Shown: positions 13,708 to 48,080 of the stretch, piece by piece | How positions within the stretch are numbered: the stretch's first letter is position 1 | Layout: every line of letters starts with the position of its first letter | Assembly: GCF_039654945.1 (NCBI RefSeq) | Contig: NW_027361771.1 | Location: 40,114,001 to 40,178,000 of the forward strand | Direction: 5' to 3' | DNA length: 64,000 nucleotides | Source of the DNA: Dendrobates tinctorius | Lineage: Eukaryota | Translations under genes and position numbers: made by a program | Notes under the pieces: generated by a model | What the model was told of the DNA's origin: nothing | The model's input: only the letters and a program-made list of their open reading frames with translations | Database searches by the model: none

Positions 13708-16700
13708 TTTCTTTATCGCCTTATTGGGGGACACAGATTACCATGGGTGTATGCTGCTGCTGCTAGGAGGCTGACACTATGCAAAACAAGAAAATTAGCT
13801 CCTCCCCGGCAGTATACACCCACCGACAGGCACTAGGCACCTCAGTGTGTGCTTAGTGTCTGTAGGAGGCGGACCGGGATCTTCCCAGATCCGCACTTAA
13901 CCTTAGATTTCTAGTAGAACTTTTTAATTCTGTCTTTTGTTTTGCAGGTTCAAGTCGGGAAACAGGGTGTAAATTTCACCCTGCTTTCCCACATCAAGCG
14001 GCTGAGCGAGCAGTATGGCATATCCCACATCGCACCTCTCAGTACGCTGGCAGGACTTTTTTTTCCATATCACCTTCTGGTGCTATGGCTTGTGGACAGG
14101 TGGCTGGTCCTTGCCAAATCCCCCTCCTCACCCCTCTCTTGGAACAGGGCTGAGAGGAAGACGGCGGGCGCAAAGGGTTACGCAGTTTTCTCCTGGATGT
14201 GGATAAAGAGGACCCCCCTCAGTGGCTTGCTCTCTTCCGGTGAGCCCTGTGATCATCCTCTTCAGGGACGTCAGGTAAGTGCCTGTACAATCCCTCCAGC
14301 CCCCGCATTATCTGCAATGAATCCATCAACAGCATCTACAGACTCTGCGTTCAAATCTCCTGCCACGCGCCTACACAGCCGCTCGTTCGCTCCTCTCTTC
14401 CAAAGGGGAACGTAGGATTGTTCACACTATTCCAGGGTGGGAGATACAGCAGCGAATCTATCAGCCGAGCTGAGGGTACCTTTATATCGGCGGCATTCCT
14501 CCTCCATTTGTCTGCACAGGGCTGCGGCATTCACTTTCACTTTCTATTCAGCTTCCTCAGCGCGCTCCCTCCTCCTTCTCTGAGCGCGCTTTCTTCGCGT
14601 GTTTATTAGCCCATCACAGGGCTCCTTTCTTTTTTGATATGCCAGCTCCCCTCTGTACCGTGCCCTCCCTGACGCAGTTAACCAATCGCGGCTCAGCCGC
14701 CAAGCTCCGCCCCCCCACGTCATCCAGCATTCTCATCCTGCGCTGTTTGGGGGACACCTCAGCGTTTTTGGCTGCTCGCCTGAATTCCGGTAGGCTCTGC
14801 TCTGACGCAAAGAATTAGCTCCCCTCTGCAGTTCTCTATCCCTAAGGCCATTCAGCGCAGTGTACTTATGCACAATCCTTCAAGGGATCTCTGTTTCAGG
14901 CCCACCGCTACACATTACGCCTGCGCATGCTGTAAAAAGAAGTGGGCATCGGGTCAGTCGTCCCCCTTCTGCCTTTCCTGCAGTCCTCCAACTATGTCTG
15001 CATCTCAGGAGCACCCCGAGCCTCGGTCTGAAAACACCCCCCCCCCCCCGTTGTAATGTCTCAGTCAGTCTCTGACTTGACTAAGGTTTCTCAGTCGCTG
15101 GTCCAGGTCTTAGAACGATTGCCTCAGCTAGCTACAGCCACCTGCGCACCGACCGCCTCGCAGGGTGAGTCGTCTGCACCTGACCGCGACCTTCAGAGGG
15201 ACAGACCGGGCAGGAGTTCTAGGAAGCGAGTTCTGTCCGGCTCGTCTTCCAGTTCGCTAGGGCCGGCTGCCTCACCCAGGTGTCCTTCTACTTCATCTGA
15301 GGACGGCCCTAGGTCAAACGACGATTCCCATTCTGAATCTAGTTCAGAATCAGATACCATATCCAAAACACGGAATATGGTCGATAGTCTCCTTTCTGAT
15401 ATCTTCCAAACCCTGGAAATTAAGCAGGATAAGACCCCGCCCCAGGAAGCTCCGTTCCATTTAAACGAGCAAGGCCCCCATCCCGAACCTTTCCAAACCA
15501 CAAAGAGTTCGATGCTACTCTAACCAAACATTGGGAGCACCCTGAGCAACGCTTCTCAGGCCGCAGGTACTTAGATGTCCTGTACCCCTTTGATGTAGAG
15601 CTTAAGGATCCAACAAATGGATCAAAGCCCCTGAAGTGGATCCTCCCGTCTCTCGCATAGCCTCTAAGACGGTTCTATCTCTCCCGGACGGGGCATCGCT
15701 TAAGGATCCAACAGACAGGCAGATAGAAGCTCTGGCTAAGTCTATTTTCGAGGCATCCGGCGCCTCTCTGTCCTATTTTCGCCTCCTCCTGGGTCGCGAA
15801 AGTCATTTCAGCTTGGGCAAAAATTCTTCGCAGAGGCATCTTAGCGGCTGCTCCTCAGGACGAGTTGGCAGATCTAGCAGATCAAATTAATCATGCGGGA
15901 AAATACCTTTTAGCCGCCTCTTTAGATGCGGCTGGGTGCGTGGCAAGGGCTAACAGCAACATAGTGGCAGTACGCCGAGTCCTCTGGCTAAAGTCATGGA
16001 ATGCGGATACCACTTCAAAAAAGTCGCTTACCAACTTACCGTTCCATGGTTCTAGGCTCTTTGGAGCCAAGCTGGATCAAATAATCTCTGATGCCACTGG
16101 TGGTAAAAGCACCTCTCTCCCCCAGTCTCGACCAAAACGTTTTTTCAACAGAAAGGGATTCCGGCCGTTTAGGTCCTTTCGCCCCTTCTCGTCCACAGAG
16201 AGATCTACCCAGCAAGATAGGCCTTCCGCCTCTAGGGAGCGTGAACAGAAAAAACGATCTTACAAACCCGCTCCCCGCTGGAGATCTAGAGGACAATATT
16301 CTAGGTCTTCAGGTGCCCATTCCGGTAGGTTCTCCTCCAAGTGACGGGTCACCCCCACCTGGAAGTTTTTCCAGGGTGGGAGGCAGACTTTCCTTTTTCG
16401 TGGACGCTTGGCTGTCGGTGGTCGACGACGCTTGGGTCAGGGAAATCATCGCGTCCGGTTACAAGATCGAATTTGCTTCCCCACCAAACAGACGTTTTTT
16501 CCTGTCTCGACCTCCAAGACAGCGGTCCCACATTCCAGGATTCTTTCAAGCCGTATCTTCCCTTCTTTCAGCCGGAGTGATTGTTCCCGTTCCCTCAAAC
16601 GAACGGTTTTCAGGGTTCTACTCAAATCTCTTCGTAGTCCCGAAGAAAGACTGCTCTCTGCGGCCAATCCTGGACCTCAAATTGATCAATCGCCATGTGA

Positions 16701-18585
16701 AGATTCTTCACTTCAAAATGGAGTCTCTTCGGTCGGTGATGGCTTCGATGGAACACGGAGAATTCCTCTGCTCTGTGGACATACGGGATGCCTATCTTCA
16801 CATCCCTGTTTGCTTGCAGCATCAGAAGTATCTTCTGCCTTCAGCCTAGCCTCCGCTCCCCGTGTTTTCACGAAGGTGATGGCGACGGTCATGGCCATCC
16901 TTCGATCCAAGGGGATTCTCATCCCTTATTTGTACGATCTCTTGATCAAGGGCTCGTCCCGTCAGGACTGCCTTCAGAGTCTTCAGATAACCCTGGATAC
17001 TCTTGGCCGTCTCGGATGGTTAGTCAACAGAAAAATCCATTCTAAGTCCCACTCAGCGTCTGACCTTCCTAGGCATGGAATTCGACACGAATCTGGCCCG
17101 GGTGTTTCTGCCGAGGGAAAAATTTGCGTCTGTCCAAAGGTATTCGAGTCCTCAAACGACCAGCGCCCATTCCCCTTCGATTCTGCATGAAAGTTCTGGG
17201 GAGGATGGTGGCTTCCTTGGAAGCAGTGCCCTTTGCACAGTTTCATATTCGCCCTCTCCAGCTGTTCCTCCTATCAGCCTGGGACAAGACGACGTTGGCC
17301 TTGGACCGCCCCATTCTCCTCCCTCTCAAAGTGAGGCAATCCCTGACTTGGTGGGCAATGCCTGTGTCAGTCCTCCAAGGGAGGTCCTTTCTTCCGCTCC
17401 ACTGGCAAGTCATCACCACCGATGCCAGTCTTCTAGGTTTGGGAGCGGTTTTCCATCAGAGAACGGCCCAGGGCCGCTGGAATTCACAAGAAGTTCTTCT
17501 CCCTATCAATCTCCTCGAGATCAGGGCAATCTTCTTCGCCCTTCTTCACTGGCAACCTCTCCTCGTCGGCAAGCCGATCCGTATTCAGCCGGAAAACGCC
17601 ACGGCCGTGGCCTACATAAACTATCAGGGCGGCACGCGCAGCCACCAAGTCATGTCAGAAGTGGCCAGGATTCTGCGCTGGGCGGAACGTTACGTCCCAG
17701 CAATCTCCGCCATTCACATTCCAGGGGTGGAAAACTGGGCAGCCGACTTTGAGTCGTCAAGGCCTAGCGTCAGGTGAATGGTCTCTTCACCCCACAGTCT
17801 TCGATCAGATATGCCAGCGCTGTAGCTCTCCGGATGTCGATCTCATGGCATCGCGAATGAACCACAAAGTTCAGTGCTTCGTGTCCAGGTCCAGGGACCC
17901 TCTAGCCGTCGCTTGCGACGCCCTAGTAATTCCGTGGTCCCAGTTCCATCTTCCTTACCTGTTCCCACCACTTGCCTTGATCCCAAGAGTAGTCAAGAAG
18001 ATAAAATCGGAAGGCGTTCTGGTGATTCTAGTGGTTCCAGATTGGCCAAGAAGGCCTTGGTATGCGGAGCTGTCAACATGCTCACGGACGTTCCCTGGAG
18101 GCTTCCAGATCGTCCAGACCTTCTCTCGCAAGGCACCCTTTACCACGAGAATTCTCGGTCTCTGAATTTAACGGCATGGCCATTGAGGCCGCAATCTTAA
18201 GGCTACTTTCACACATCCGGTGTGTGGGGTCCGGCGGCGTGCGGCGAAAAGCCGGGCCGCCGGATCCGGCCTGCAGCCGTGACACCGGATGTGTGTGCGG
18301 CGAGACGATACGGCTCAGACATTATTAAAGGAACCGCAGGACGAGGTGGATAGAGGCAGCCGATGACAGACAGCTGCTGAAAGGGAGGTGAGGGGAGGGG
18401 GGGTGGAGAGAGAGAGACATGGGGGGTTAACACTTAGTGTCCAGGCGAGAGAATCTCTCTCTTGCCGGCCACTTGTGGGGTTAACCCCACAGAGAGATCT
18501 CTCCCTCTCACCCAGACACTGTGAGTGTTAACCCCACAAGTGCCCGGCGAGAGAGATCTCTTACAAGTGTCCGGGTGACAGAGAG

Positions 18586-18674
<89 letters not shown>

Positions 18675-20267
18675 CACTTGTGGGGTTAACATTCACAGAG
18701 TCCGGGCATGCGCTGCGGAAAAAGCCGGTCCGGCGCTGACAAACGTTGCAGGGAACGTTTTTTGCAGATGCCGGATGGCTAATTTATGCCGTGTCCGGCA
18801 ACAACCGGACACGACGCATAACCATCCGGCACGATGCGGCGCCCATGAAAGCTTATGGGACAAAACCGGATCCGGTGCTGGATCCGGTTATGAAAAATTT
18901 CGCCGCATCGTGCCGGATGTGTGAAAGAGGCCTAAGAGTCGGGTTTGTCCAACCAGGTGATTCAGACAATGATCAAAGCCAGAAAACCAGCCACTTCCCG
19001 CATTTACCATCGGTACTGGAAGGCTTTTTTCCGTTGGTGCGACGATAAGAAAGTATTTCCAATGTCCTTTTCCATTCCGTCCATACTGGGTTTTCTTCAA
19101 TCCGGCTTGGATTTGGGTCTGTCTCTCAGTACCCTCAAGGGACAGGTCTCCGCCCTATCGATTCTCTTCCAAACAGAGCTCGCTTCCTTGTCTCAGGTTA
19201 AGATCTTTCTCCAAGGGGTCGCCCACGTGGCTCCCCCTCATCATTCGCCGATAGACCCGTGGGATCTCAATCTCGTCCTTAGCGTTCTTCAAAAGACGCC
19301 GTTTGAGCCTATCCAGGACATTTCGCTTTCCCTTCTCTCATGGAAGGTAACCTTTTTGATTGCCATCACGTCCATCAGAAGAGTCTCTGAGCTGGCGGCA
19401 TTATCATGTCGATCCCCTTACCTGGTTCTCCATCAGGATAAGGTCGTCCTCAGGCCTGTTCCTTTTCTTCCGAAGGTGGTGTCCTCTTTGCACATCAATG
19501 AGGATATCGTGCTGCCATCCTTTTGTCCTGTTCCTTCTCACCCTCTTGAGAAGTCACTCCACAACCTGGACGTAGTTAGAGCATTGCGTGTTTCTCGCCA
19601 GAACCTCTTCATTTCGGCAGTCTGACTCGTTGCTGATCATCTCTGAAGGTCGCCGGAAAGGGCTTCCAAATCCACGATCGCTCGCTGGATTCGTTCTACC
19701 ATTCTGGAAGCGTACCAACTACAGGAAAAACGGCCCCCTCCGGGAGTGAGAGCTCACTCCACCCGGGCCGTGGCGGCGTCGTGGGCCGTTCGTCACCAGG
19801 CCTCAGCTTTACAAATTTGCAGGGCCGCTACCTGGTCATCCTTACACACATTTGCGAGGTTCTACAGGGTTCATACCCAGGCCTCGGCTGATGCAGTTGT
19901 TGGTAGGAAGGTTCTGCAGGCGGCGGTGGCACACCAACCGACCTAAGCTCTTCCTGTTCTGTTCGTTCCTTATTGCTGTTCCCGCCTTTGGGACTGCTTT
20001 GGAACGTCCCATGGTAATCTGTGTCCCCCAATAAGGCGATAAAGAAAGATGGATTTTTGGTTCTTACCGTAAAATCTTTCTTGGAGCCTTCATTGGGGGA
20101 CACAGCACCCTCCCTGTTTAAGTTGTACCGTGTTAGGTCCTTGAGTCCCTTGTTGGGTTGTTTTGCATAGTGTCAGCCTCCTAGCAGCATACACCCATGG
20201 TAATCTGTGTCCCCCAATGAAGGCTCCAAGAAAGAGATTTTACGGTAAGAACCAAAAATCCATCTTT
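13708..20267 (+). mobile_element. DIRS1-type retrotransposon copy 1, full length but frameshifted
   Basis: Left ITR from 13708. gag ~14868-16344 (CxxC...CxxC). RT (LRPILDLK, DIRDAYLHIP). RNase H (TTDAS). Methyltransferase-like domain (DLMAS, YLFPP). Tyrosine recombinase (SIRRVSEL, HSTRA, FY) to 19946. ICR 20009-20105. Right ITR plus extension ~20160-20267. TTT at both junctions. Confidence 0.95.
18201..18932. mobile_element. Harbinger-type MITE inserted in the YR 5' end of DIRS copy 1; contains (CT)n at ~18587-18671
   Basis: TAA target duplication at 18198-18200 and 18933-18935. TIRs ggctactttcacacatccgg / ccggatgtgtgaaagaggcc. Confidence 0.88.
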
Positions 20268-21151: not shown

Positions 21152-21439
21152 GTAAAGAGTTTGTTTTTGTTATACTACTGTTGTAATAGTCGGTTTTTCC
21201 CAAATTGTGTTGCATAAAAAAAAAAAAAACATGTCTATCTCCAGAAGAAGCCTCTTGTATAGTCTACAGAACCTATGTTCTTGGTTTATGGCTTGTATTA
21301 ATCATTAATCTGTACTATAGTCAACCATATTGTTCTGATACTAGCATTTGCTTTACAGGATTTAAAATTGAGACAAGAAATCTCGTAAAAAAAATTTTCT
21401 CAGACTACTCAAGTAGCTTCTACATGTAGGTACAGTCTT

Positions 21440-21650
21440 CACGTTTATCAGGGACACCATCTTTGGTGAGAACAGTGGGTTCACTAATCAACCCTGGCCA
21501 TTAAAAGGGAATGTTACCCCAAAAAATAAAAAAAATTGTGTTTTTTTTTTTTTTTTTTTTTTTTAGGGCACATTCCCTTTTAATGGCCAAGGTTGATTAG
21601 TGAACCCACTGTTCTCACCAAAGATGGCCTCCCTGATGAGCATGAAGCAG
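21440..21650. repeat. Near-perfect hairpin with ~95-bp arms and A/T-tract centre
   Basis: ccatctttggtgagaacagtgggttcactaatcaacc... mirrored by ...ggttgattagtgaacccactgttctcaccaaagatgg. Confidence 0.85.
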
Positions 21651-25200: not shown

Positions 25201-25994
25201 GCGGCTCTGTGTGCGGCCATTGATGATGCGATTTTCTGTCATGTGTTCTCTGCTCCTTTTGGGCAGACAATGGCTGGGAACTTATGTTCCCGGGGATGCT
25301 AGATTTCTCCCACCCGGTCAGTGTCTGCTGAGGTGTTGTGGAGTGGGGAAACTGTTGCTCATAGCAACCAATCACAGCTCAGCTTCTTCTCAACAGCTCT
25401 GGTGAAATGAAAGATGCTTAGTGATTGAAATTGCTCCTTCATTCTATAAACTACTGACAACATGTCTTCGAATTTCCAAGCACTAAATTTTGTATTTATT
25501 TTCAGAAAATGAGAAATGGTCAAAAGAACAAAAAAATGCAGTGCTTGCAGACCTCAAATACTAAGAAAACAAATTCATAATCATTTAGAAACAACAATAC
25601 TAATGTTTTAACTCAAGAAGGGTTCAGAAATCAATATTTTGTGGAATAACCATGATTTTTAATCACCGCTTTCATGTGTCTTGGTGTGCTTTCCACTTGT
25701 CTTTCACACTGCTTTTGGGTGACCTTATGCCACTCCTGGTACAAAAATTTAAGCAGTTCTTCTTTGAAGGTTTGTGACTATCCATCTTCCTCTTGATTAC
25801 ATTCCAGAGGCTTTCAATGGGGTTCAGGTCTGGAGACTGGACTGGCCATGACAGGGATTTGATGTGGTGGTCCTTCATCCACACATTGATTGACTTTGCT
25901 GTGTGGCATGGCGCATTGTCCTGCTGGAAAAATCGGTCCAGAGTTGGGGAACATTGCCTGAACAGAAGGAATCCACTGTTTTTCCAGGATAAAC

Positions 25995-28199
25995 AAGGGG
26001 GGTACCCTGGGTAAACAGAGCGTCCAAGATAGTCACAACTGATGCCACCTGGACACCCTGTGGCATCAGAATGCCTGGTCTCAGGAAGAAAGAAGCCTGT
26101 TGTCGAACGTCTGGGAGCTCCTAGCTGTCAAGAGGGCATTGAAGGGACTGTTACCATATCTACAGGGACATATGAGGGTTTTGTCGGACAATCAAGCTGC
26201 AGTAGCCTACATTAATCGCCAAGGGGGCACTCGTTCTCGTCCGCTAATGGAGGTAACAAAGAATTCTGGCACTTGCAGAAAGACCTTTCCTTTCATTATT
26301 GGCCCTGCATATCCGTGGAAAAGACTATTTGAAAGCAGACTTCCTAAGTCGCAACCAGCTAAGAGGGAGAATGGTCCCTAAAAAGATCAGTGTTCAACCA
26401 GATTATGGACACGTGATGTTGCCCCCAGATAGACCTATTTGCCTCAAGGGACAACAGGAGGGTCCAGAAATGATGTTCCTTAAGCCCAGCAGACAGACCG
26501 TATGCAGTAGATGTCTTCAAGATAGTGGTCACCAGGACTCCTCTATGCCTTCCCTACAATTTGCCTCATACCTTCAGTCGTAAGGAAAATCAGAGAGGAC
26601 AGGGCCAGAATAATCATAATAGCTCCGTTTTGGCCAAAGAGGCCTTGGTTCTACTGGCTGAGGGCAATGTCGGTGACGGATCTGTGTGTCCTCCCGGAGG
26701 ACCAAGATCTCTTGTCACAGGAGCCCTTCTTTCATCCTCAGATGTCCGGGCTGCATTTAACAGCCTGGAATTTGAGAGGGCACTTCTAGAAAGGAAGGGT
26801 TTCTCAGCAAGGTTAATCCTCCACTCTGCAGTGCTCAGTAGCAGAAAGCCAGTAACCACTAGAATTTATGGGAAGATCTGGAAAAAAATGTTATCCTTCT
26901 CAGGACTGGTACGGGAGAGAGAGTTCCCGTTAGTGGCCATACTTGAGTTTCTACAGAAAGGGCTAGAGCTCGGCTTAGCAGTTAGTACCCTTAAAGTGCA
27001 GATTTCAGCCCTTGGGGAGCGTTATATAATTGTGACCTGGCAAATGATAGATGGGTGGCCAGATTCATTAGGGCCTGTAATAGAGCTACCTCTGTTCCAT
27101 CTCCTACGCCTCCTCCATGGGATCTGTATTTGGTGTTATCATTGGCAGAGAGTCCCTTTGAGCCATTAGACTCCATTTCAGAAAGAGTGATTTACATTGA
27201 AAACAGCCTTATTGGTTGCACTCACTTCAGCCCATAGGGTAGGTGATTTTACAGGCATTGTGAGCAGACCCTCCCTATACACAGGTCATGAAGGATAGGA
27301 TAGTGTTGAGATTAGACCCGGATTACCTCCCCAAGGTGGTGTCAAAGTTCCACAGAACTCAGGAAATGGTCCTACCATCATTCTGCCCTAATCCGAGAAA
27401 CCAGAAAGAGGAAAGACTGCATTCCCTAGATGTTAGGAGGTGTCTTCTATGTTATTTAAAGATAACAGAACCCTGGAGTAAGCAGGGAGCCCTGTTTGTG
27501 TCCTTTCAGGGGTCGAGGAAAGGCCTTAAAGTGTCCAAACGGACTTATAGCTAGGTGGGTGAGAGACACCATAAAGATAGCTTATGTTAGTGCAGGCATA
27601 GCTATTCCTGAAGGTCTGAAAACCCATTCCACGACAGCCATGGTGACATCCTGATCATAGAGAGCAAATGCCTCCATCGACCAAATTTGTAAGGCAGCTA
27701 CTAGGTCCTCTCCTTCTACTTTCTTCAGACACTATAGATTAGATCTGTCTGCTTCCTCTGACCTCACATTCGGGAGAAGAGTGCTACAGGCTGTGGTACC
27801 TCCCTAAAACTACATATCTCTGTAATTCTCTCGTGGTGCCGTCATGGGTGACTGAAAAGCACGGGGTATTACTTACCTGGTAATGTGTTTTTTCGTAACC
27901 CATGACGGCACCCTTATTTTCCTTCCCTATTTTATAGATCACCTTTTTATTCTGTGCATCGTCATAATCAGACACACCCTTGGGGGGTTGGTAGATAGAA
28001 TTCTAATGTATAAATGAATGTATTATTTTGAGTGGACACTAATCCGCGGAGTTCCTCTCATGCTCTCTAAAACAACTGATGCGGAGAGAGGAGCTGCCCT
28101 CTTTATCTTGAAGGTTTCCTGTACTTGAATGGCGGATCTCTTGTGGTGCCGTCATGGGTTACGAAAAAACACATTACCAGGTATGTAATACCCATGTTT
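25995..28199 (+). mobile_element. DIRS1-type copy 2, 5'-truncated (RNase H, MT, YR, ICR, right ITR)
   Basis: TTDA, SDN...AYINRQGGTRS, APFWPKRPW and YR LPKVV/SLDVRR motifs. ICR ~27830-27912. Right ITR to ~28199. Confidence 0.9.
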
Positions 28200-28978: not shown

Positions 28979-30598
28979 GCAAGTGCTTGTTTTTGGTTAA
29001 TACTTCTGATATTCACAAGAGAGCTGCTGTAATATATCTGCTTGGAAATGTCAAAAAATGTTTACCGTATATACTCTACTATAAGCCGAGATTTTCAGCC
29101 CATTTTCTCTAGCAGCCTTCCACGACAGCATAGGAGGTTATCTCCACGCCCTAATGGGGGACAGGAAGCACAAGAGGTTAAAAGGTCCCTCCCACCTCCC
29201 TCTCACCTGTGTCTTTCCTGTCCCCCATGGGGCATGGAGAGGTTATCGGTTTGCTGTGTGGCCGGCTGCGGCAGCGTACCTGGATGATCTGGCCAGGCAG
29301 TGGTGGTCGGCGGCGCTGCCTCCCCTCCTCCGGACTGCTCCCGTCTTCTTCGGAACTCGGGACCTTCCTGGCCCACCCGCGCTCCCCTAGAGGGAGTAAA
29401 GCAGGCCAATGATCCCCGACCGGAGGCCTCCCACAGCCCTCCGGTCTCTCCTCCTCCTCCTGCTGCGCTGTCGGCGACCTGGAAGTGATGCCATGGCGGC
29501 CCCTGTTCTGCTGATAGCGCATGGCGCTCGCCAGCCGTGCTGTGCCTGCCCCAGGACCCAAAGGAGGGGGAGAAACAGAGAACCAGCGCTGAGGGCGGGG
29601 TTAACCCTTTATTAACCCGCCGGAAGAAGCCGACAGGTAAGGTAAATCCCCTGTCAGCATGGACGGTTCTGCCTGCCTGCATCTGCAGAGCCCAGCGCTG
29701 CCCCAGCCAGTGTAAGTGTTACTTGGGGTGGGTCCCTAGTGGTGCGATCCGGGTATAGAGGTCCTCAAAATACTTCCCCCCCCCCCCCCCTTTTATAGGG
29801 AGAAAAGTCTGCCCACAAAAGCACCAATACCACCAGCGAACCAGCTAAATGTCCCATATGTAGCGCAAAACTCCCCTCAAATTGGAGGAAAAAATTGTGT
29901 CAGACATGCACGGACGGGGTAGTCAGGTCTGAGCACCCGTCATTGATTGACGAAATCCGCAGCCTGGTCACTCAACAGGTTCAGACCTCTCGGGCTGCCC
30001 TGCCCCCTCCACCACTCCCTCTGACTGTGGGCTCACCTTCCCCAAAGAAGCGGAAAATTCAGATAGAGGATTCGGAGTCCAAGTCAGAACATTCCTTCAA
30101 CTCAGGTTCTGAAAATTGGGAACAACCAGGGACCTCTAAATCAGCTGAAAATAGGAGATACCGCTTTTCCGCGGAATATGTGGAGGAGTTGGTCAGTGTG
30201 GTACGTGCCACCATAGGACTAGAGGATGAACCAGTCCCTCAATCAGCACAGGACCGAATGTTTGGGTTCCCAGTACATGGGAGCATAGTAGATATGATCT
30301 CCCAGGAATGGGAATACCCAGAAGCGCTATTCAGCTCCTTCGGAACTCGCGCATAGATTCCCCCTGGAGGGAGAGGCATTTAAATGGGACATCCTGAAAG
30401 TTGATGTTCAGGTGGCAAAGGTAGTGAAGAATACGGTCCTTCCATTTGATGATGTATCCCAGCTTAGAGACCCGATGGACCGTAAAGCAGAGAGTCTCCT
30501 AAGGAAAGCCTGGGAAACCTCTGCCTTAAAATCAGGAATTGCTTCCACATGTGTGTCCAGGTCCCTCTTCCAATGGATACAGGAGCTAGAGAATCATA

Positions 30599-33500: not shown

Positions 33501-36230
33501 ATTCTCTGGCAGTTTTTCCACATTGGAGTGGTCGGTGGAGGTCCTGCAGCAGCTGATACTGTGTTAAGTTTTCAAGCCAGTTGTGGGTCACACAACTGGA
33601 ATAGGTGAGTGGAATTGCAATACACCACTCGCATTGTAGTGTCACTAGTGATAGGGCACTATTGCTCCTCTTGTTCCCCCACCCTTTTTGTATTGATACA
33701 GTAAAGGGCAGGAAAGGGGAGAGTATTTTATTTCCCTCTCTTCCTGATACCTAAGCCAGATGGCTCACTCAGGACAATAATCAACCTGAGGAAGCTAAAT
33801 TCATTTATAATAAACCATAAATTTAAGATGGAATCCATAAGATCTACGATTAAGCTCCTCTTCCCCAATTGTATGATGGCAGGTTTGGATCTGAAATATG
33901 CTTATCTTCCCATCCATTACAGATATCAGAAATACCTCAGAGTGGCGGTATTCCTCGATGGCACCATACAACATCTCCAATTCACAGCCATGCCATTCGG
34001 CCTTTCCATCACACCGCGAGTCTTAACAAAGGTGATGCTGGAGGTGATGGCTTTTTTACGCCAAAAGGACACACTGATAGTACCCTATCTGGATGACTTT
34101 TTGATAATAGGAAACTCAACTCGGCAATGTAATAAACGAGTTGCTGATGCAATCTTATCCCTACAGGCTCTAGGTTGGATAATAAACTTCAAGAAGTCCA
34201 CAATCGAGCCGCAATCCGTTCAGTCCTTCCTTGGTCTCCAACTAGACTCCATAAATCGAAAATGTCTGCCACAGGTAAAAATTTCAGTGATTTAAAATAA
34301 AGGTCAGGTCAGCAATAGACAGGCCACACATATCCTTAAGGGATGCAATGTCCCTCCTGGGGTCCCTGACTTCCTGCATTCCGGCAGTTCGATGGGCACA
34401 GTTCTACATGAGGTAATTACAGCATCAAATTCTCTTACAAGAGACCCATGACCGTGGGAATTTGACAAAGAAAATTACCTTATCCCAGACGGTCCTAACC
34501 TCCCTAGCATGGTGGCTAGAGGATGATAATTTATCGGGGGGAGTACCATGGGTGATAACACCCTCCCATATAATTACTACTGATGCCAGCCCCACAGGAT
34601 GGGGGGCTCATATGGGAGGCACCTTCACAAAGGGCCTATGGGATATAAGTGAAGATCAGGATTCTTCAAACTTGAAAGAGCTAAAGGCGATTAGTCACGC
34701 ATTATATCATTTTCTTCCACAGTTACGAGGGGAAAACGGGAGAACCCTTTCAGACAACACCACAGTGGTCGCATATATGAACAGGCAAGGCGGGACTCGA
34801 TCAGTCGCCTTAATGTCTTCCGCAAGAAAGATCTTGTCCTTAGCCGAAAAACACTTTTTGTCTCTCTCGGCTCTCCATATAAGAGGGAGAGACAATTCGG
34901 AAGCAGACTTTCTAAGCCGCCATACTCTACGGCAAGGAGAGTGGTGCCTGAGCCAGCAGATATTCACACACATCGTGTCACTATGGCGTCTTCCCCAGAT
35001 AGATCTCTTCGCCACCAGGAAAAACAGGCAGGTGCGAAGATTCGCCTCTTTGAACGTGACAGTCTGGAAATTCTGGATGCCCTCCAAGCCCCATGGCGGT
35101 TCAAACTAGCATATGCATTTCCCCCTATCATACTATTGCCGCAGGTGATCAGGAAGATCAGGGCAGAAAAGGCACGAATAATCTTGATAGCGCCATTCTG
35201 ACCCAGGAGGCCATGGTTTTCTTGCCTCCAGACAATGACAGACCCTTGGGTACTTCCTTCAATCCTCAAGCTCCTCTCGCAGGGGCCATTCTTCCATCCT
35301 CAAGTGGACAACCTCCACTTGACGGTTTGGAACTTGAAAGGGAAATGTTGATGGCAAGAGGATTCACGGAAGGGTTAGTCAATACTCTCCTACAGAGTCG
35401 AAAATTAACAACGACAAAAATTTACACCAGGATATGGAGGAAAATCCTAGAGTTCCACACAGCTCCCGACTCTAGAGAAATTCCGATAACATTGATCCTA
35501 GAGTTTCTACTAAAAGGGAAAGAGTTGGCACTACCTGTTAACACACTGAAAGTCCAGGTGTCTGCTCTAGGAGCCCTCTATAGTTATAATGTGGCAGGCA
35601 ATAGATGGGTAGCCAGATTCATCTCGGCCTGTGAGCGGAGCGAACCGGTACACATACCTAGAGTTCCTCCTTGGGACTTGAATCTCGTACTAGAGGCCCT
35701 TACACGTTCCCCCTTTTGAGCCATTAGACTCGATATCCTTTAAACACCTATCTCTCAAGACAGTACTACTATTTGCACTAACCTCAGCTAGAAGAGTTAG
35801 CGACATACAAGCACTCTCAATAGAACCCCCTTTTCTATTGACATTCCAGGATCATCTAATATTAAAACCAGACCCCTCATACCTACCAAAAGTAGCAGGG
35901 AAGTTTCATAGGTCACGAGATTCACCTCCCCTCACTTTTTAGTAACCCTTCTACTCCAGAAGAAAAGTTTCATACACTAGACGTTAGAAGAGCAGTATTA
36001 CAATACATCGAGAGGTCTAGCAGCTGGAGGAAGAGTAGGGCTCTATTTCCTTTCAGGGCCAAAAGAAGGGATATGAGGTCACAAGGGGTACCCTGTCTCG
36101 ATGGATCAGAGACGCGATCAGTCTGGCATACTCCATGAGCAATGAAAATCCTCCGGATGGTATCGGCACATTCCGCCAGAGCTATAGCTTCATCATGGGC
36201 AGAGAGGGGAGACGTCGCAATAGTCTATAT
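30599..36230 (+). mobile_element. DIRS1-type copy 3b, nested in the gag of 3a and 3'-truncated
   Basis: A new left terminus, ttttactcttcgccacaacagcac, interrupts the 3a gag at WIQELENHI. Own gag ~31520-32730, RT YLDDFL, RNase H TTDAS, MT DLFAT/YAFPP. YR ends before its C-terminal Tyr. Confidence 0.88.
33019..33260 (-). mobile_element. CR1 ORF1 esterase-like fragment within the RT of DIRS 3b
   Basis: GAQVRHIADQVDRLLGGAGEDPAITVHIGTTD matches the CR1 ORF1 SGNH-esterase block VHxGTND. Confidence 0.75.
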
Positions 36231-39200
36231 ATAATGCTGCAACTTGGTCAACTTCCTGAGCAGAAGATGTATCCAGCCTGGCGAGTGGAGTCTGAATGGA
36301 AGAATCTTTCAGAAGCTGGTGAACAGGTGGGGTCTTCCGGAGGTGGATCTCCTAGCATCGAGCAAAAATACTCAAGTAGGAAATTGCTTCTCCCTGAACC
36401 CCAGGGACAAATCCTTGGGCGTAGACGCCTTTGCCCACAAGTGGGTGTTTCATCTAGCGTACGCCTTCCCGCCAATTCCAATCCTTGCCGCAACCCTGAG
36501 GAAGATCCGAGAAGATCAAACCCAGACCATCCTGGTAGCTCCGCTATGGCCGAAGAGGAGCTGGTATTCTCTAATTACAGTGCTCCAGGTAGACGGGCTG
36601 TTCCTCCTACCCCTGGAGGATGACCTCCTCCTGCAGGGCCCTCTACATCACCCAAACCTTCGGGGAATGAAGCTAGTGGCCTGGTTACTGAGACCCAGAT
36701 CTTGAAGGCCAGGGGTCTATCAGAGGCCGTAATAGAAACCCTTCAGAAATCTCGGAAACCTGGCACCAATGCTATATAAAACAAAATATGGAAAAAAAAT
36801 TTCCTCATGGTGTCTGCCAAATTTGCCTGACCCAGAAAACCCTACCATCTCCTGTATCCTGGATTTCTTACAGAGGGTGCTTAAGCTAGGTTTAAAGCCT
36901 AGCACACTGAAGGTACAGGTATCGGCCTTAAGCTCTGTTTGACCGTGACTTGGCCAGCCACAGATGGATAAAAAGATTCATGACGACAGCCACTAGGTTA
37001 CATCCAAAAAAACAAGTAGTCATTCCACCATGGGACTTGAATGTGGTGCTTAAAGGGCTCACTCAACCACCCTTTGAGCCCTTAGCATCTTGTACTTCTC
37101 AGCTCCTCTCCTGTAAAGCAGCCTTCCTTATAGCAATAACTTCAGCAAGGTGTGTAGGAGAGCTCCAGGTTCTTTCTATTAGGGAGCCCTACCTAACCAT
37201 TAGGGACGATTCCATAGTTCTCTCCCTCGATCCATCTTTTCTACCAAAGGTTGTGTCTGACATCCATAGGTCGCAGAATATAATTCTTCCCTCGTTTTGT
37301 CAAAACCCAGCGAACCCTAAAGAGGTGTTTCATACGCTGGACGTAAGACGCATAATTCTTCACTATTTAGAGTATACCGAACCCTACAGAATCGACCACA
37401 ACCTATTCATCTTAATTGTAAAGTGCTGCGGAATATGTTGGCGCTATATAAATAAAAATTATTATTTATTATTATTCATCCATGTGTCCAGTCCAAACAA
37501 AGGGAAGAAGGTGGCAAAGAATACTATTGCCAATTGGATTAAAAAAAGCCATCTCTGAGGCATACCTAGCGCAGAACATCACACCCCCTACAGGGATCAA
37601 GGCGAATTCAACACGATCTACCTCTACCTCATGGGCTGAGAGGGCAGGCGCATCATCAGAGCAGATTTGTAGGGCAGCAACTTGGTCCTCCTTGCATATC
37701 TTTTACTACCTTTACTAAACATTACAGGTTGGACCATGTGTCCAACAGGGATTTAGTCTTTGGCCGAAAGGTTCTTCAGGCCGTTGTATCCCTCCCCCCC
37801 CCCCCCCCCCCCCCAAGTCACTGATGAGAGGGAGGTTGGAGGGACCTTTTAACCTCTCGTGCTTCCTGTCCCCCATTAGGGCGTGGAGACAACCTCCTAT
37901 GCTGTCGTAGAAGGTTTCTAGACACCGAATTACCGGTGAGTCAAACTCTATTTTTTTGGGGCTGAAAGTCCCTCTCAGGTTATATTCAAGTCATATACAC
38001 CAGGGGGTCGGAGGGGAGAGCGGGGGTGTCAGGTCATACTTGCCCGTCCTGGCACGGTCTCTGCAAGCCCCCAGCTTCTCCGCGATCTCCCTTCCTTCAG
38101 CGGTCACATGGTACCGCTCATTAAAACTCATAAATATGCACATATTCATGCGTTTAATGAGTGGTACCACGTTACCGCTGAAGGGAGATCGCGGAGAAGC
38201 TAGGGGCTGCAGAGACCGTGCCAGGACGGGTAAGTATAGCGATACTCACCTGTCTGGGGTCCATCGCTGCTTGCTGCTCTCTGGCACGTTATCTGTCAGT
38301 GACGTTCAGACAGCAGAGGGCACGGTGACGTGGTTAGTGCGCGCCGCGACCCCTGCAGTCTGAACATCACCGACAGATGACGTGCCAGACAGCAGCAATC
38401 AGCGATGGACCGGGGTACAGGTGAATATCTCAGGTGCCAGCAGTGACACCGGCACCTGGCCCCAGCGACGGAGAGGTGAGTGTGTCATAATTTTTTTTTT
38501 TTTTTTATTTATTATTTTTTTTTTTTTTAAATGCGGCAGCACATGGGGGCAGCATATGGGGCATATTCTATGGAACATTTTATGGAGCAGCATATGGGGC
38601 ATATTCTATGGAGCATCTTATGGGGGCATTATTAACCTTTTGTACAGCATTATATGGGGTGTATTTTGTATGGAGCATCTTATGGGGCCCATCATGAACT
38701 GTATGGAGCATTATATGGGACTCCTGATTCAATATGGATATTCAAAAACATTTAACCTACTGATGTCTCAATTAATTTTACTTTTATTGGTATCTATTTT
38801 TATTTTTGAAATTTACCAGTAGCTGCTGTATTTTCCACCCTAGGCTTATACTCAAGTCAATAAGTTTTCCCAGTTTTTTGTGGCAAAATTAGGGGGGGGG
38901 GTCGGCTTATACTCTAGTGTGTGTATATATGGTAATTAGTTTTGCTAAATATCAGTTTATAGTTATCTGAATTTCACACCCAATTAAGTAATAATTTTAT
39001 CGTATATCCTATTGATTTATGTGCTGTATTGCCAATATATTATGCAGTGCTGTTAAGAGTGATACTACTGTCATCTCGTACAAACGCATATAATTGGGCC
39101 AAATATATAGGAAGCCAATTAACAACATATTGGTGTGTTTTTACGTTGGGGAGCCCAAAGGAAACCCACACAAATACAAGAAAGTCTTTAAACTGTGTTA

Positions 39201-41227: not shown

Positions 41228-41595
41228 TTTTTCATATAACTTTATTGAACATTTTTGTCAATAAAATAGAATGGATGGGTTAGGGGAGGATATAGTAGAA
41301 AGAAGTTGCTGTACGGGAACAGTACAATGGAAAGTATTGGAGGGAAAGGGGATAACTAAACACTTAACAGTAGTGTTTATAACCTATAATGAAGTTAATA
41401 GTTACTGTTGTTTCTTAAAGATAAATATAACGTATCCTGAGTAGCTGTAAATGAATAGCTATAAATTGAGGAGAGACCTATTTAGCACATGTTCAGGGAG
41501 CAAAGCTGTTGCAGGATTCCCATCTCTTGAGAGAGGGTGCATAGTAATTGTTAGCATTTGCATGGGCTTTTTCATATGAGTTGTGGAGTGACATT
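41228..41595 (-). mobile_element. Short L1 3'-end insertion in L1-A
   Basis: 13-bp TSD cctactttactcc (41215-41227, 41596-41608). AATAAA plus a short A tail on the minus strand. ORF2 C-terminus-like YEK...KRWES. Confidence 0.8.
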
Positions 41596-42290
41596 CCTAC
41601 TTTACTCCTAAACTTACTCCGCAGTGGAATAAGATTCAAATCTGCATAGCTTGAAATCGGAAGTGCCACCTGAATGCCCAGGTATTTAAACTGTAGCACC
41701 ACTGCCAACCTACTACCCTCCCCCGACACTGGCAAATCAACAACACAATCATCTACAGCCATGACACTGGATTTTTCCCAGGTAATTTCTAATCCCGATA
41801 TAGACCCAAATGTTTTGATAATTTCCATTGCTCTAAACAACGACTCTCCGAAATCCTCCAAAAAAAGCAAAACATCACCTGCATACAATGACACTTTTTC
41901 CTCTACCAAGCCATATCTGCACCCTATAACCGAAGCCATCCTCCTAATAGTCTGCGTCAGGGGCTCCACTGCCAAAGCAAAAAAGTAGCGGGGACAGCAG
42001 ACACCCCTGCCTAGTCCCCCTATGAAGCGCAAAACTCCCAGACATTTGCCCGTTAACTCTGACCCTAGCGGTCGGTGAAGTATATAGCAACCGTATCCAT
42101 GAAATTAAGGTCGGCCCAAAACCAAAGCGTTCCAACACCCTCCAAAGATACTGCCACTCAACACTACCAAACGCTTTACGCGCGTCCAATGATACCACAA
42201 CCTTACTGCCCCTATTGTCCGACGGCAGCTGCAATTTCAGAAAGTCTACCCAATTTCAGAAAAAGTCTACGCAAATTAATCGCTGTAGAC

Positions 42291-45200
42291 TTTTCCCTTC
42301 ACCCATGACAGCACCACCTGAGAGAGGGATCCGCCCCGCCAGGACAGGAACCTACTGAGACATAAGGGGCGGCACCTCTCCCCCGCTTCAGTTGGGTTCC
42401 TGTCCTGGAAGGAATCCCACTGTGGCGGTGCCTGTCATGGGCGAAGAGAAAGATAAAGACCCAGGCCCGTCCCGGCGTGGGAAGAACAGGTAGCATACCT
42501 GTAGCGCCGGCCGTCGGGTCCTGGAAGCGCAGTCCCTGGGGCTCCGGGTTCGTGCGGGTGTGGATGGGATCCCGGTGGCTCCGGGAAGCCCCCACCGCGC
42601 CACCCTCCCCTCGCGCACGCCGCATCTCGATCCCCGTGGTAGGGGAGAGACGCTGGCGTCTTCCGGCCGGTGACGTCAGCGGCGCTTGGAATGCTGGGTG
42701 CGCCGGCTGACGTCAGCAGAAGGCGACGGTGTAATGGCGCCGGGTGCGACGCCGGCTTTCTGAAGCGCTGGGCCGCCGGTTGCAGGGGGGAGGGGAGGAA
42801 GACGCTCACCAGGCGGAGGCATGCAATTTAGAAGGAGGAAGACAGCTGTAGATCGGCGGTGCAAAATGGAGTCCGAGCAGGAACGTTCAGCGTCCCTGCC
42901 TCCCTCACAGCCCTCTGGCAGAAAGCATGGAAGCCATTCAAGCAGCAGTCGCCCCAGCCGCAGGTCGGGGCACTCCTCAAGGTCCAAACAGCGCGGGTCA
43001 GGTGCTCCGACGCAGCCTCCAAGTCCGGTACCCTTGATTTACGGGTGGTGAGTGATCTTCGTGAATGTTAGCAGTATATTAATAGAGGTTTTCTATTGTA
43101 TGCTTCACCCTGTAGGAAAAGCCCAGAAAAGCGGGAAGCAAGAAGAACAATAGGGATTGTGCTATATGTAAATCTCCCCTAGCAAGAGACTGGCAAAAAG
43201 ATCTCTGTGCTTCGTGCATTCAGCGGACTATGGCGGAGGAAGCGCCTAGTTTCGCAGCCAATCTAATATCTGCCCTCAGGTCAGAAATGGAAGGCTCAAT
43301 TAAGTCCTTATTGAAAAAAGGGGAAAAAAAAGCAGGAAGGATTTCCCTAGTTCCCCCTCAGATTCCGCGTCAGTATCATCTCAGGCGGAAAAATCATCCT
43401 CCTCAGATAGTGACACAGGGGGTAAGCCATGTTTCCCTGTAGAAGATACAGATGCCCTCCTAAAGGCCATTAGAACCACAATGGGCCTACAGGAAGAAAG
43501 GGCGGCTAAAACCCTAGAGGACGTCATGTTTGGGGGGCTTCAGGAGAGGAAAAAACGAACCTTTCCAGTAAACGCGAAAATCCAGGCGCTTATTGAGAGA
43601 GTGGAAAAAGCCTGAAAAATCGGGGGCCCTTCCATCCGATACGATACCCCTTTGAATACAAGGATACAGAGATATGTGACAAAGTCCCAAAAATAGATGC
43701 AGCGGTGTCCAGGTCTTCCAAAAGGTCGGCCCTGCCCTTGGAAGACGCAGGGGTTCTTAGAGACCCGCTGGACAAAAAAGCGGACTCATATTTGAGGCAC
43801 GCATGGGAAGCGACAGCAGGAGGTCTAAAGCCGGCGATAGCGGGCACCTGCACGGCACGCTCCCTCATGATCTGGCTGCAGCAGTTAGAAGAGAAGCTGG
43901 CGTCAAGGGTCCCAAGAGAGAAGATCTTATCAGACATGTATCTCTTGCACGGGGCAGCGGCTTTTTTGGCAGATACCTCGGCGGACTCTATGCGATTGAC
44001 AGCCAGAGCAGCGTCACTATCAAATGCTGCTAGACGCGCGTTATGGCTTAAGGGCTGTCCGGGTGACCTTCAGTCCAAGGCCAAATTGTGCTCTCTCCCC
44101 TGCGATGGTCGATTCCTGTTCAGCAAGAACTTGGACGATATTCTGGAGTAAGCAGGCGATAAGAAAAAAGGCTTCCCCAGATTCCCTATGGATCAGAGGA
44201 GACAGCCCTTTCGGAGGGGGAGATTCAATAGAGGGCGTCCTCCCGCTGACAGAAGAAGATGGGAGGATAAAAGGAAGAAAGAATCAGGGTTTGTTTGGTG
44301 GAGGCACCTCCACCTCAAAAAAGTCACCACAATGACGCCAGTATTCCAGTAGGAGGGAGATTGGCACTCTTTTTCCAGGCCTGGGAAAAGATCTCCTCCA
44401 ATACCTGGATTCTGAGCATCCTAAAAGACCTGAAAATCCCCTTTATTCGTCAGCCAAAACCCGTGGTCGTCATCACACCTATCAGGAAGATGATCGAAGA
44501 ACAACTGGCCTTAGAAACAGAAATCCTGAGCCTGATAGACAAGCGGGTACTGTCCGAGGTGCCACGCTTACAGGAAGGAAAGGGGTTTTATTCACCCCTT
44601 TTTCTAATAAAAAAACCGGATCAGTCGTTCAGGACAATCATAAATCTCAGACGCCTCAATCTATGGATAAGGAACACGACCTTCAGGATGGAATCGGTAA
44701 CTACGGCAGTGAAGCTGCTACATCAAGATTGCTTCATGGCCGTAGTCGATTTAAAGGATGCGTATTACCACATCCCTATCATCCAGATTACCAGAAATAC
44801 CTGAGGGTAGCGCTTTATATTCAGGGCACACTAAGGCACTTTCAGTTCAGGGCTCTTCCGTTTGGCATATCCATAGCCCCGAGGGTCTTCACCAAGGTCA
44901 TAGCGGAAGTGACAGCTTTTCTCCGGATTCACGATACGGTCATAATACCATACCTGGACGATTTTCTTATAGTGGGCAGTTCAGAGGACCACTGTACAGC
45001 ACAGTTGACTCGGGTGATCAACACCTTGCAAGAGTTAGGGTGGATAGTCAATTTCAAAAAATCAAAATTACAACCCCTAAAGAAACAGACCTTCCTAGGA
45101 TTTATACTGGACTCAGAAAGGCAAGAGTGTCTGCTCCCAGAGTCCAAGATAGAGAAGGTGCGAAATCTGGCCTTGGCGGGCCGGAACCAACCATGTATGA

Positions 45201-48080
45201 CATTAAGAAAAGCAATGTCCCTACTAGGTACCCTAACATCCTGTATTCCGGCGGTCAGGTGGGCTCAATTTCACACCTGGCAACTCCAGGGGGAGATACT
45301 AAGAGCACAAAGATCGCTAAGAGGGCGTTTGGAAGGAAAGCTGGAGCTTTCCTTAAAAACCAGAGACTCTCTCAACTGGTGGTTGAACGAGACAAATCTG
45401 ACCTTAGGAATACCATGGGACAGACAGGCGACAGATATAATTTTAACAGATGCAAGCTCCTTGGGGTGGGGGGCACACCTAAGGGGCCTCATAGGTCAGG
45501 GTTCCTGGACACCTCAAGAAAGGAAGGCATCCTCCAACCTGAGAGAACTGTGGGCAGTGGGCAAGGCCCTAAGCCACTTCATTCCGCTACTCCAGGGTCG
45601 AGATGTACGCATCATGTCAGACAACAAGGTAGCAGTGGCATACATCAACCACCAAGGAGGGACAAGATCACACTCCTTAATGGAAGCAGCAACAGACATT
45701 CTGAGCAGTGCAGAGGAACACCTACACTCCGTGACAGCCCTACACATAAAAGGGGCAGAAAACAGAGGCAGATTTCCTGAGTCGCAATACCCTGAGGCAA
45801 GGAGAATGGGCGCTAAACCGGTCCATCTTTCAAAACATAACTCAGCTTTGGGGGGAACCGGTGATAGACCTCTTTGCAAACAAGCACAACAGGCAAACAG
45901 AAAGGTTCTGCTCTCTAAACCCGAGGGAAAATCCATGGGCAGTGGACTCGTTGCACATCCAGTGGAACTTCAGACTGGCTTACGCGTTCCCCCCCCCCCC
46001 CCCTGTAGCTCTGATCCCAACTGTGGTAAGAAAAATCAGAAACGATCAAGCCAGGGTGATTCTAATAGCTCCATTTTGGCCAAAAAGGCCCTGGTTCGCT
46101 CTGCTACGGAAGATGTCCCTCTCCGATCCATGGGTTCTGCCAGAAATCCCGGACCTACTAGCTCAGGGTCCAATATTGCACGCTCAGGTCAAAGGATTCC
46201 ATCTGACGGCGTGGAATTTGAAAGGTCGCTTTTAATGGATAGGGGGTTCTCCCCTGGGCTGGTGGCCACTCTGCTAAAAAGCAGGAAACCGGTGACTACT
46301 AGGGCCTCTTTCACACTTCAGTTTTTTGCATCAGTTATAATCCGCCAAAAAGGCGGACAAGCGGATCCGTTCTCAACTGACGTGAACGGATGGCACAGGA
46401 TCCGTTTTCAGACGGATCCTGAAAATGAAGAAATTTAAAGGAATCGCTGGCGAGAGAGAGTGAATTTTTTTTTCTTGTTTTGTCCGGCACCCAGAAAGAA
46501 ATTCGGGTTAAAGCAGTGTCTGCAGGATCCACCAGAGAAAAAAACGTTACAAGCTCCGTTTTGAAATCTTTGAGGATGGTGACGGACAGCAACTTTTGGC
46601 GGATCCTCACAAAAAACGGATGCAATGGACAGCAATCCGTCACAATCCGCCATTAATGCAAGTCAATGGGAAAAAAACGGATCCTCAAAAAAAAATTGAG
46701 GATCCGTTTCTTTTTCAAAACCTGGCGGATTGTGACTGATTGTAAAAAACGGAAGTGTGAAAGAGGCCTAACATCTACGGCAGAACATGGGATAAGTTCC
46801 TACAGTTCTTGGGTAAGCCGTTAGGAAAAGAACCCCCGATTAGTGCCATCCTAGAGTTCTTACAATCTGGGTTGCAGATGGGGTTAGCAGTAAACACACT
46901 TAAGGTTCAGGTGTCGGCACTAGGGGCGCTCTACAATTGCAAACTGGCATCAGATAGGTGGATAGCCAGATTTATTAAATCCTGCCACAGAGCTAGGCCT
47001 ATTCCAATACCCAGAATAGCCCCCTGGGATTTAAACCTGGTGTTAGAAGCCCTTACAAAAGATCCGTATGAGCCATTACATCAGCTACCCCTAAAGTTTT
47101 TGACCCTAAAAACGATCCTGTTAGTAGCCCTCACATCAGCCCGCAGGATAAGCGACTTACTGGCTCTCTCAGTAAATCCTCCTTTTACGCAAGCTTTTCA
47201 GGATAGGGTAGTGTTAAGAACAGACCCCAGTTATCTGCCCAAGGTAGTATCAGATTTCCATCGGGGTCAGGAAATTGTCCTTCCATCCTTTTGCGAAAAT
47301 CCAAAAAATCTGGGGGAGGAAAAATTCCATAGTCTGGATGTTAAAAGAGCTCTTGTAGAATATATATCTGCCACTAGCCAGTGGAGGAGGTCACAGTCCC
47401 TATTCGTAGCTTTTCAGGGTGCCAGGAAAGGCTATGGGGTTTCAAAAGGGACTATTGCTAGATGGATTAGGGAAGCCATTAGTGTAGCCTATTCAGCTAG
47501 TGGTATCCCGATTCCTGACGGCATCAAGGCTCATTCCACCAGAGCCGTGGCGACCTCCTGGGCTGAAAAGGCAGAGGTATCAATCGAACAGATTTGTAAG
47601 GCCGCTACCTGGGCCTCACCTTCAACCTTCTTTAAGCACTATAGATTAAATCTATCCTCCTATGCTGACTTAACCTTTGGTAGAAGGGTGCTGCAAGCGG
47701 TGGTCCCTCCCTAAGGTGTTTCGAAGTCTCCAAAAATCTCTCAGGTGGTGCTGTCATAGGTGAAGGGAAAACCACCATGGTTACTTACCGGTAGCCGGTT
47801 TTTTCCGGAACCCATGACAGCACCCGTACATTCCTCCCCCTTTTTCACTGTATGGGTGTGCACAATTAGTAGGGTGTTTTGAGTGATTGTGGTGTTGGAT
47901 TAAACATATAACTAACCGGGAAGTCCTCTCAATGCTCTGTAACCCAACTGAAGCGGGGGAGAGGTGCCGCCCCTTATGTCTTAGTAGGTTCCTGTCCTGG
48001 CGGGGCGTATCCCTCTCTCAGGTGGTGCTGTCATGGGTTCCGGGAAAAACCGGCTACCGGTAAGTAACCATGGTGGGTTT
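42291..48080 (+). mobile_element. DIRS1-type copy 4, full length and best preserved
   Basis: Left ITR 42291-42398 matches right ITR 47941-48040. ICR ~47738-47825. gag, RT (DLKDAYYHIP, YLDDFL), RNase H (TDAS), MT (DLFA, YAFPP), and YR with TSARRISD, HSTRA and FKHY. Inserted at a T-run in L1-A ORF2. Confidence 0.96.
46303..46768. mobile_element. Harbinger-type MITE in the YR 5' end of DIRS copy 4
   Basis: Perfect TIRs ggcctctttcacactt / aagtgtgaaagaggcc with tag/taa flanks. Removal restores RKPVTT-NIYGRTW in frame. Confidence 0.9.

Follow-up and report, generated by a model that had tools for sequence, protein, structure and literature searches.

DIRS1-like retrotransposons are built from inverted terminal repeats (ITRs), a right extension and an internal complementary region (ICR) (Cappello 1985; Piednoël 2011, PMC3266345). 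A 64,000-nucleotide stretch of the Dendrobates tinctorius genome (RefSeq assembly GCF_039654945.1, contig NW_027361771.1, forward-strand positions 40,114,001 to 40,178,000), hereafter the window, holds five such elements, A to E, all on the + strand between 13.7 and 48.1 kb. They raise a question about how these elements end: why should the right terminus of a retrotransposon look like a 5′ splice site? Elements A, B, C and D each bear a donor-like 9-mer near the right end, and a motif of this kind recurs at the right ends of DIRS families from frogs to sea cucumber and scallop. Judged by its sequence and conservation, the right-extension motif G|GTRAGW, often followed by A, is a selected cis-element that is indistinguishable from a strong animal 5′ splice site. 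No description of an outward-facing, donor-type motif in the DIRS right extension appears to exist in the searchable literature.

The four donor-like 9-mers of the window (Table 1) were placed by counting from G+1 to element ends that are fixed by the ICR or by the flank. A first-pass annotation of this DNA had pointed to all four, and its coordinates for them (20245, 28181, 37936 and 48060) are correct. Its spacing of 18-23 nt from the end is only approximate, with the site in B lying nearer. The motif of D falls in a 27-nt right extension (48050-48076), and no internal 9-mer of the element scores as high. The motif of A is flanked by hairpin arms, GATTTT at 20236-20241 and AAAATC at 20255-20260, which form a 6-bp helix (P 0.04).

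The ICR repeats these termini internally. In A, B and D it mirrors first the left tip and then the right end, each in reverse complement, and so amounts to the reverse complement of the circle junction, in agreement with the published DIRS1 model (PMC3266345). The three elements share this layout, with right extensions of 27-30 nt and ICR halves of about 35 and 55 nt; such lengths have been measured previously (PMC3266345). The motif is mirrored in the ICR as TCTTACCGT at 20062-20070 in A, as ACTTACCGG at 47783-47791 in D, and in B as the reverse complement of CAG|GTAAGT (27871-27879). The earlier placement of the termini within ICR-mirrored segments holds for these three elements and not for the other two, C having lost its ICR and E showing none in the window.

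The comparison was extended to 19 DIRS1-like right ends or ICR copies, resolved from environmental contigs and nine genome loci in addition to the window. Full elements were fetched from Xenopus tropicalis, Bufo bufo, Lithobates pipiens, Ahaetulla (snake), Hemicordylus (lizard), Apostichopus (sea cucumber), Mizuhopecten (scallop) and one unidentified eukaryote. Further right ends came from environmental contigs and Logan contigs. Family termini were placed by the ICR in each case, and a fish locus (L008) with unresolved ends was left out. A sense-strand G|GTRAGW is present 10-36 nt from the right end in fifteen families, which come from frogs, snake, lizard, sea cucumber, scallop and environmental contigs. 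The hexamer is GTAAGT in nine of them, GTAAGA in three, GTGAGT in two and GTAGGA in one. Hemicordylus keeps GTGAGT in its ICR copy only, and family Lgn37 adds ACCG|GTAAGT.

Scored on an approximate 5′ splice-site weight matrix, the 9-mer reaches 8.4-11.1 bits in 14 of 18 right ends. By comparison, 0.06% of internal 9-mers reach 8 bits, which corresponds to about 2.3% per 45-nt window. The chance of finding the motif at ten or more of 12 ends is 2e-15 on the assumption that families are independent, an independence that such binomial figures overstate given the common ancestry of the families. Among the 12 full elements, sites of at least 8 bits occur on the + strand of the right end in ten, on its − strand in none, and on the + strand of the left end in none. 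Two elements have such a site on the − strand of the left end; these are both invertebrates, where the motif lies within the ITR core. The motif thus always faces outward.

Alignment of the fifteen families on the motif reveals a sharply bounded pattern. G+1, T+2 and G+5 are present in all fifteen, position +3 is A in 13 and G in two, and +4 is A in 14. On either side, −1 is G in 13 families, +6 is T in 11 and A in four, and +7 is A in ten. The invariant GT that the first-pass annotation had put forward as a test of U1 likeness is therefore observed, together with an equally invariant G+5. Fixed bases at +1, +2 and +5, a purine at +3, and T or A at +6 make up the tolerance profile of pairing with U1. 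The logo follows the MAG|GTRAGT consensus from −1 to +7, with C instead of A at −2. Core columns carry 1.3-1.9 bits, whereas those beyond −6 and +9 carry about 0 bits and the flanks cannot be aligned between families.

The surroundings of the motif are far less constant. Its distance from the end, its location in the right extension or the ITR core, and its position in a loop or a stem all vary by family. Protein identity between families is 37-62% for the tyrosine recombinase (YR) and 29-38% for the reverse transcriptase (RT). A motif that stays constant while distance, setting and proteins change is consistent with a linear signal recognized by a host factor that itself stays the same.

Descent of all families from one ancestor might by itself explain a shared motif, and dead copies do mutate it freely: B has GTATGT, Hemicordylus ATGAGT, L025 GTAAAT, and L026 has CTAAGA in its ICR copy. 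However, the partner copy of each, whether ICR or terminus, is still intact, which indicates that these changes arose after insertion. Moreover, the flanks are saturated while the core is retained across lineages that split before the vertebrate-echinoderm divergence. We therefore consider it very improbable that chance or shared ancestry without function is all there is to the motif. From its retention despite saturated flanks and diverged proteins, and from the post-insertion origin of the mutations, we conclude that the donor-type motif is under purifying selection in active DIRS lineages. The motif is in all likelihood functional.

What might read it? Because the element proteins have diverged strongly, conservation across phyla is better explained by a constant host factor. 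The account that we tentatively favor, with somewhat less than even confidence, is that the terminal motif is read by a host factor, probably U1, and marks the 3′ boundary of the element RNA. A factor with the same specificity in different phyla would read it in RNA extending through the right end. The likeliest such reader would be the 5′ end of U1 small nuclear RNA, and recognition of the motif by U1 is plausible, though well short of assured. Marking could proceed by two routes. U1 might bind without splicing and suppress nearby cleavage and polyadenylation, or the motif might be used as a splice donor, with read-through RNA being joined to an acceptor in host sequence downstream. By either route, the ICR would supply the sequence beyond the motif during repair of the cDNA end. 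The stricter proposal, that in bilaterian DIRS1-like elements the 3′ end of the replicative RNA is set at an outward terminal donor by the host U1 small nuclear ribonucleoprotein or the spliceosome, with the ICR rebuilding the removed tip, appears unlikely in that form. If true, splicing would create an end-replication problem for the retroelement, and an internal template would solve it.

Several observations weigh against recognition by U1. About two thirds of families have the motif embedded in a palindrome, TTACC·GGTAA. The bases conserved at −5 (T), −3 (C) and −2 (C) complete this palindrome rather than a splice consensus, which prefers A at −2. Conservation is thus not confined to the U1 footprint. 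Stems of 5-8 bp, differing in sequence between families, flank the motif in eight of 14 families. In sense RNA that reaches the right end, the motif and its ICR copy, made some 250 nt before it, are predicted to form a perfect 53-bp duplex that should hinder U1. The motif is also absent from a fish-like family (L018, L024) and from L009, the unidentified eukaryote, which carry a palindrome or hairpin in the same place. In L018 and L024 the palindrome, GTTAC...GTAAC, spans the circle junction itself. In addition, the 5′ and 3′ splice-site matrices are approximate, being based on textbook frequencies and not on MaxEntScan. Finally, among contigs from four small public runs that were aligned to D, of unspecified type and none on record as RNA, there is no joint or loose end at 48059/48060 and no joint at 42311/42312, a result that is uninformative on splicing.

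Much of this structure would suit a replication signal that is read by the element's own machinery and resembles a donor by coincidence, which we regard as a doubtful but substantial possibility. Such a signal could be a 3′ hairpin loop with a role in priming or positioning reverse transcription, a portion of a plus-strand primer beside the purine tract of the right ITR, or a palindromic DNA site, TTACC·GGTAA, for the N-terminal domain of the recombinase or the methyltransferase-like domain of the element. The summed complementarity of the flanks in 14 families is 72 bp, compared with 53.1 ± 3.3 bp in shuffles (P < 0.0005), and it is achieved with stems of differing sequence. The palindrome partner is kept at −6 to −2, families without the motif retain a palindrome or hairpin at its position, and ICR mirroring and RNA base pairing suit a structural role for the nucleic acid. 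There is also a precedent, in that reverse transcription of Dictyostelium DIRS-1 has been suggested to be primed by a hairpin at the mRNA 3′ end (Poulter and Goodwin, cited in PMC7192593). Retrotransposition requires the ICR at a step that follows first-strand cDNA synthesis, and the primer is still undetermined (Malicki et al. 2020, PMC7192593). As in the hairpin so cited, the small stems described here lie a few nucleotides from the right end; however, it is the loop sequence, a splice-donor consensus, that is conserved in the present families, not the stem, and several families are stemless.

Other features fit a structural signal less well. Single-sequence folding is weak (z mostly −0.2 to −1.9), six of the 14 families have no flanking stem, and the motif falls in a loop in some families and in a stem in others. 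G+5 and T+6 are among the best-conserved positions yet lie outside the local palindrome. Drift would be expected in a site bound by proteins with only 30-40% identity left between them, and an arbitrary conserved 7-mer would resemble a strong sense-strand donor only about 1% of the time by chance. Reading of GTRA as a GNRA tetraloop was ruled out, since the closing positions are G and G. Inspection by eye for recombinase-type arms inverted about the crossover gave no consistent pattern.

The first-pass annotation had gone further and proposed splice signals at both ends. A left AG acceptor and a right GT donor would delimit a giant exon that is spliced into host RNA or back-spliced into a circle, and the ICR would restore the 17-30 nt lost at each end. 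Homology in the ICR would be adequate for this, as it extends into the element by 10-16 nt from the left AG and by 35-39 nt from the right GT, enough for annealing. Left tips are genuinely pyrimidine-rich in most tetrapod families, where they are the complement of the purine tract in the right ITR. The AGs that had been noted at 13736, 29128, 30619 and 42311 are all present. However, they form no distinct conserved signal, and their 3′ splice-site scores are ordinary. On a simple matrix, Xenopus reaches 9.5 bits, D 4.8, C and E 4.2 and A −1.6, while six families have no candidate. Scores like those of the window's left tips (at most 4.8 bits) are met at roughly 1-5% of internal positions, a rate of about 1% giving a chance of about one in four per 45-nt tip. 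One pairing in the earlier reading also changes: the left partner of the right end at 37936 is 29128, within element C (ITRs 95% identical), whereas 30619 belongs to the left end of E.

Conservation of the left CAG has another source. In D it belongs to the core CATGACAGCACC, which is present in both ITRs and both ICR halves, and in general the CAG-bearing core GACAGCACC occurs four times per element at these same places. The annealing of the ICR already accounts for conservation of this core without splicing. In most families 15-29 nt separate the AG from the first base, the sole exception being sea cucumber at 42 nt, and a branch point at the usual 18-40 nt upstream would thus mostly fall in host DNA. 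Taken on sequence, the pyrimidine-rich left tip with its CAG is not an independent splice signal. Sequestration of the donor by the ICR duplex would weigh against this proposal as well. The back-joint 48059->42312 was not among the joints reported for the four runs of contigs of unknown type, although other back-joints were. Known circular-RNA exons have inverted repeats in their flanking introns. DIRS elements resemble them, with ends that look like an acceptor upstream and a donor downstream and with long inverted repeats close by. In DIRS, though, the repeats are located within the would-be exon, which would be about 5.7 kb long, and the acceptor is weak. We judge splicing at both ends to be quite improbable.

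One published case does involve splicing of DIRS1 sequence. DIRS1 gag was exapted as the LAP2alpha exon of TMPO and in ZNF451 (Abascal 2015, PMC4495291), and the DIRS1 copy, captured twice in mammals, was inferred to have had a splice acceptor plus a poly(A) signal (PMC4495291). Element E of the window likewise has a gag of the LAP2alpha type. The inferred acceptor, which offers some encouragement to splicing at the left end, was placed upstream of gag in an ancient copy and not at the left tip, and a donor is unmentioned (PMC4495291).

No AATAAA or ATTAAA is found between the ICR and the right end in ten of 12 families, a weak point in favor of the U1 reading that in so short a region is compatible with chance. 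Internal sense-strand donors are not depleted (33 observed, 37.5 ± 5.7 expected). Logan contigs that carry an identical YR were found in seven runs. Five of these break at the fourfold core at the ICR end and two about 50 nt earlier inside the ICR, and they look like assembly breaks rather than transcript ends. A 'mini-intron' GT...AG of 37-49 nt across the circle junction was considered and ruled out as too short for vertebrate spliceosomes.

Regulatory donors near transcript ends have precedents among viruses, which bear on the preferred reading of the motif by a host factor such as U1. The major donor of human immunodeficiency virus type 1 (HIV-1) and of foamy virus suppresses the poly(A) site in the 5′ long terminal repeat. 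A donor in the late 3′ untranslated region of bovine papillomavirus type 1 inhibits polyadenylation, and Rous sarcoma virus has a negative regulator of splicing. DIRS ends are alike in having a consensus donor near the transcript end, and the viral donors act through U1 binding without productive splicing. The viral elements differ in being single-stranded and established by experiment, whereas the DIRS motif has its complement inside the element and is known from sequence. A full-text literature search found neither a splice-donor nor a U1 motif described at DIRS termini, Poulter and Goodwin's review being outside its reach, and the searchable literature treats the right extension only as ICR-mirrored sequence, with no conserved motif reported in it. 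Likewise, no characterization of RNA 3′-end formation in animal DIRS families was found in the reachable literature.

Table 1. Positions in the window of the DIRS1-like elements, their donor-like 9-mers and associated features. Distances run from G+1 to the right end of the element.
Feature	Position	Strand	Description	Evidence
DIRS element A	13708-20264	+	left ITR 13708-13789, ICR 20008-20105, right ITR plus extension 20158-20264	inverted-repeat search, blast-short, sequence
Left tip of A	13708-13736	+	pyrimidine-rich start, then GGGGGACACAG; best 3′ splice-site score −1.6, poor	
Donor-like 9-mer of A	20242-20250	+	ACG|GTAAGA; G+1 = 20245, 20 nt from end; 8.6 bits	
ICR of B	27827-27912	+	5′-truncated DIRS; reverse complement of CAG|GTAAGT at 27871-27879	
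Donor-like 9-mer of B	28178-28186	+	CAG|GTATGT; G+1 = 28181, 13 nt from end; 9.9 bits	
DIRS element C	29102-37957	+	ITRs 29116-29205 and 37825-37914, 95% identical	
Left tip of E	30598-30619	+	ttttactcttcgccacaacag; 3′-truncated DIRS, sits inside C	
Donor-like 9-mer of C	37933-37941	+	CCG|GTGAGT; G+1 = 37936, 22 nt from end; 10.3 bits	
DIRS element D	42291-48076	+	left ITR 42291-42398, RT/RNase H open reading frame from 44663, YR open reading frame 46809-47714, ICR 47737-47824, right ITR plus extension 47941-48076	
Left tip of D	42291-42311	+	ttttcccttcacccatgacag; 4.8 bits	
Insertion inside D	46299-46767	.	469 bp, high-copy	joint 46298->46768 in 4/4 runs, depth >1000
Donor-like 9-mer of D	48057-48065	+	CCG|GTAAGT; G+1 = 48060, 17 nt from end; 10.5 bits	

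The five DIRS copies of the window lie on the same strand across 35 kb (13708-48076) and are preserved to different degrees. A is full length with degenerate open reading frames (ORFs), and B, truncated in its 5′ part, ends on the right at 28193. C is missing its ICR, and a poly-C run at about 37795-37815 occupies the expected position of the ICR and spacer. A deletion between CCCTCCC-like sequences, one where the YR ORF ends and one in the right ITR, seems to have removed the ICR. The host flanks of C (29085-29101 and 37958-37975) are mutual inverted copies, ttttcagccc ... ggggctgaaa, which indicates that C inserted at the center of a palindromic sequence. The middle of C has been replaced by E, which has its LAP2alpha-type gag ORF at 31807-33018 (match to LAP2alpha 1.6e-20) and RT at 33828-34295; no ICR or right ITR of E was found in the window.

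Element D has ITRs that are 95% identical and an intact ICR. Its domains include RVT_1 (4.7e-12), RT_RNaseH and a weak match to Phage_integrase, and its YR has DIRS-type homologues across many amphibians and reptiles. Between them, D and E carry the tyrosine recombinase, RT/RNase H and gag-like ORFs of a DIRS1-like protein set. An Rfam search of D gave no match. The elements of the window start with TTT and have no target duplication. Consistent with this, a contig from one public run joins 42292 to 48082 as gtagacTT[A]TTTggcata and represents an unoccupied D site, at which insertion took place in a T-run, at a short shared trinucleotide and without target-site duplication; this contig probably derives from another copy of the flanking LINE-like repeat. 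The adjoining element of that kind, next to or within which D lies, extends over 48454-54443 on the − strand, with an RT ORF at 50665-51393 and a coiled-coil, ORF1-like ORF at 53382-54443. The 469-bp insertion in D, which has GA-rich microsatellite parts and is absent from most copies of D's family, is probably a short interspersed element or a miniature inverted-repeat transposable element (MITE).

Other repeats occur in the window. Remains of a Tc1/mariner-type transposase lie at 60610-61419 (+), with Sleeping Beauty-type helix-turn-helix domains by Pfam, and at about 25631-26500 (−), where they were recognized by eye only. Tandem-repeat arrays occupy 4393-5706 and 9308-9935, the latter with a 57-bp period and 98-99% identity. 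Near-perfect, MITE-like hairpin palindromes are present at 21437-21647 and 38258-38411, with arms of 99 and 68 nt and loops of 13 and 18 nt, respectively.

Two elements from other genomes have unusual features. The Hemicordylus DIRS (L004, 11770) lies in sense orientation in a host gene with NTF2 and RNA recognition motif (RRM) domains, and reads ACG|ATGAGT, mutated at −1/+1, at its terminus and ACA|GTGAGT in its ICR copy. The Ahaetulla DIRS (L003, 11124-11736) has two ICR-like blocks, a normal one at 11124-11214 and a longer one at 11311-11487. The longer block is the reverse complement of the full circle junction, comprising the whole 122-nt left ITR and 57 nt of the right end, and may be a fossil left by aberrant replication.

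A motif shared from echinoderms to frogs offers a mutable handle on how DIRS elements make and prime their genomic RNA. If U1 reads the motif, a whole order of retrotransposons would be linked to the host splicing machinery, and the existence of the right extension and its ICR mirror would be explained. If element proteins read it instead, their recognition site would have been identified. Across large amphibian genomes, with their thousands of DIRS ends, strong donors facing outward probably give rise to chimeric transcripts with host genes.

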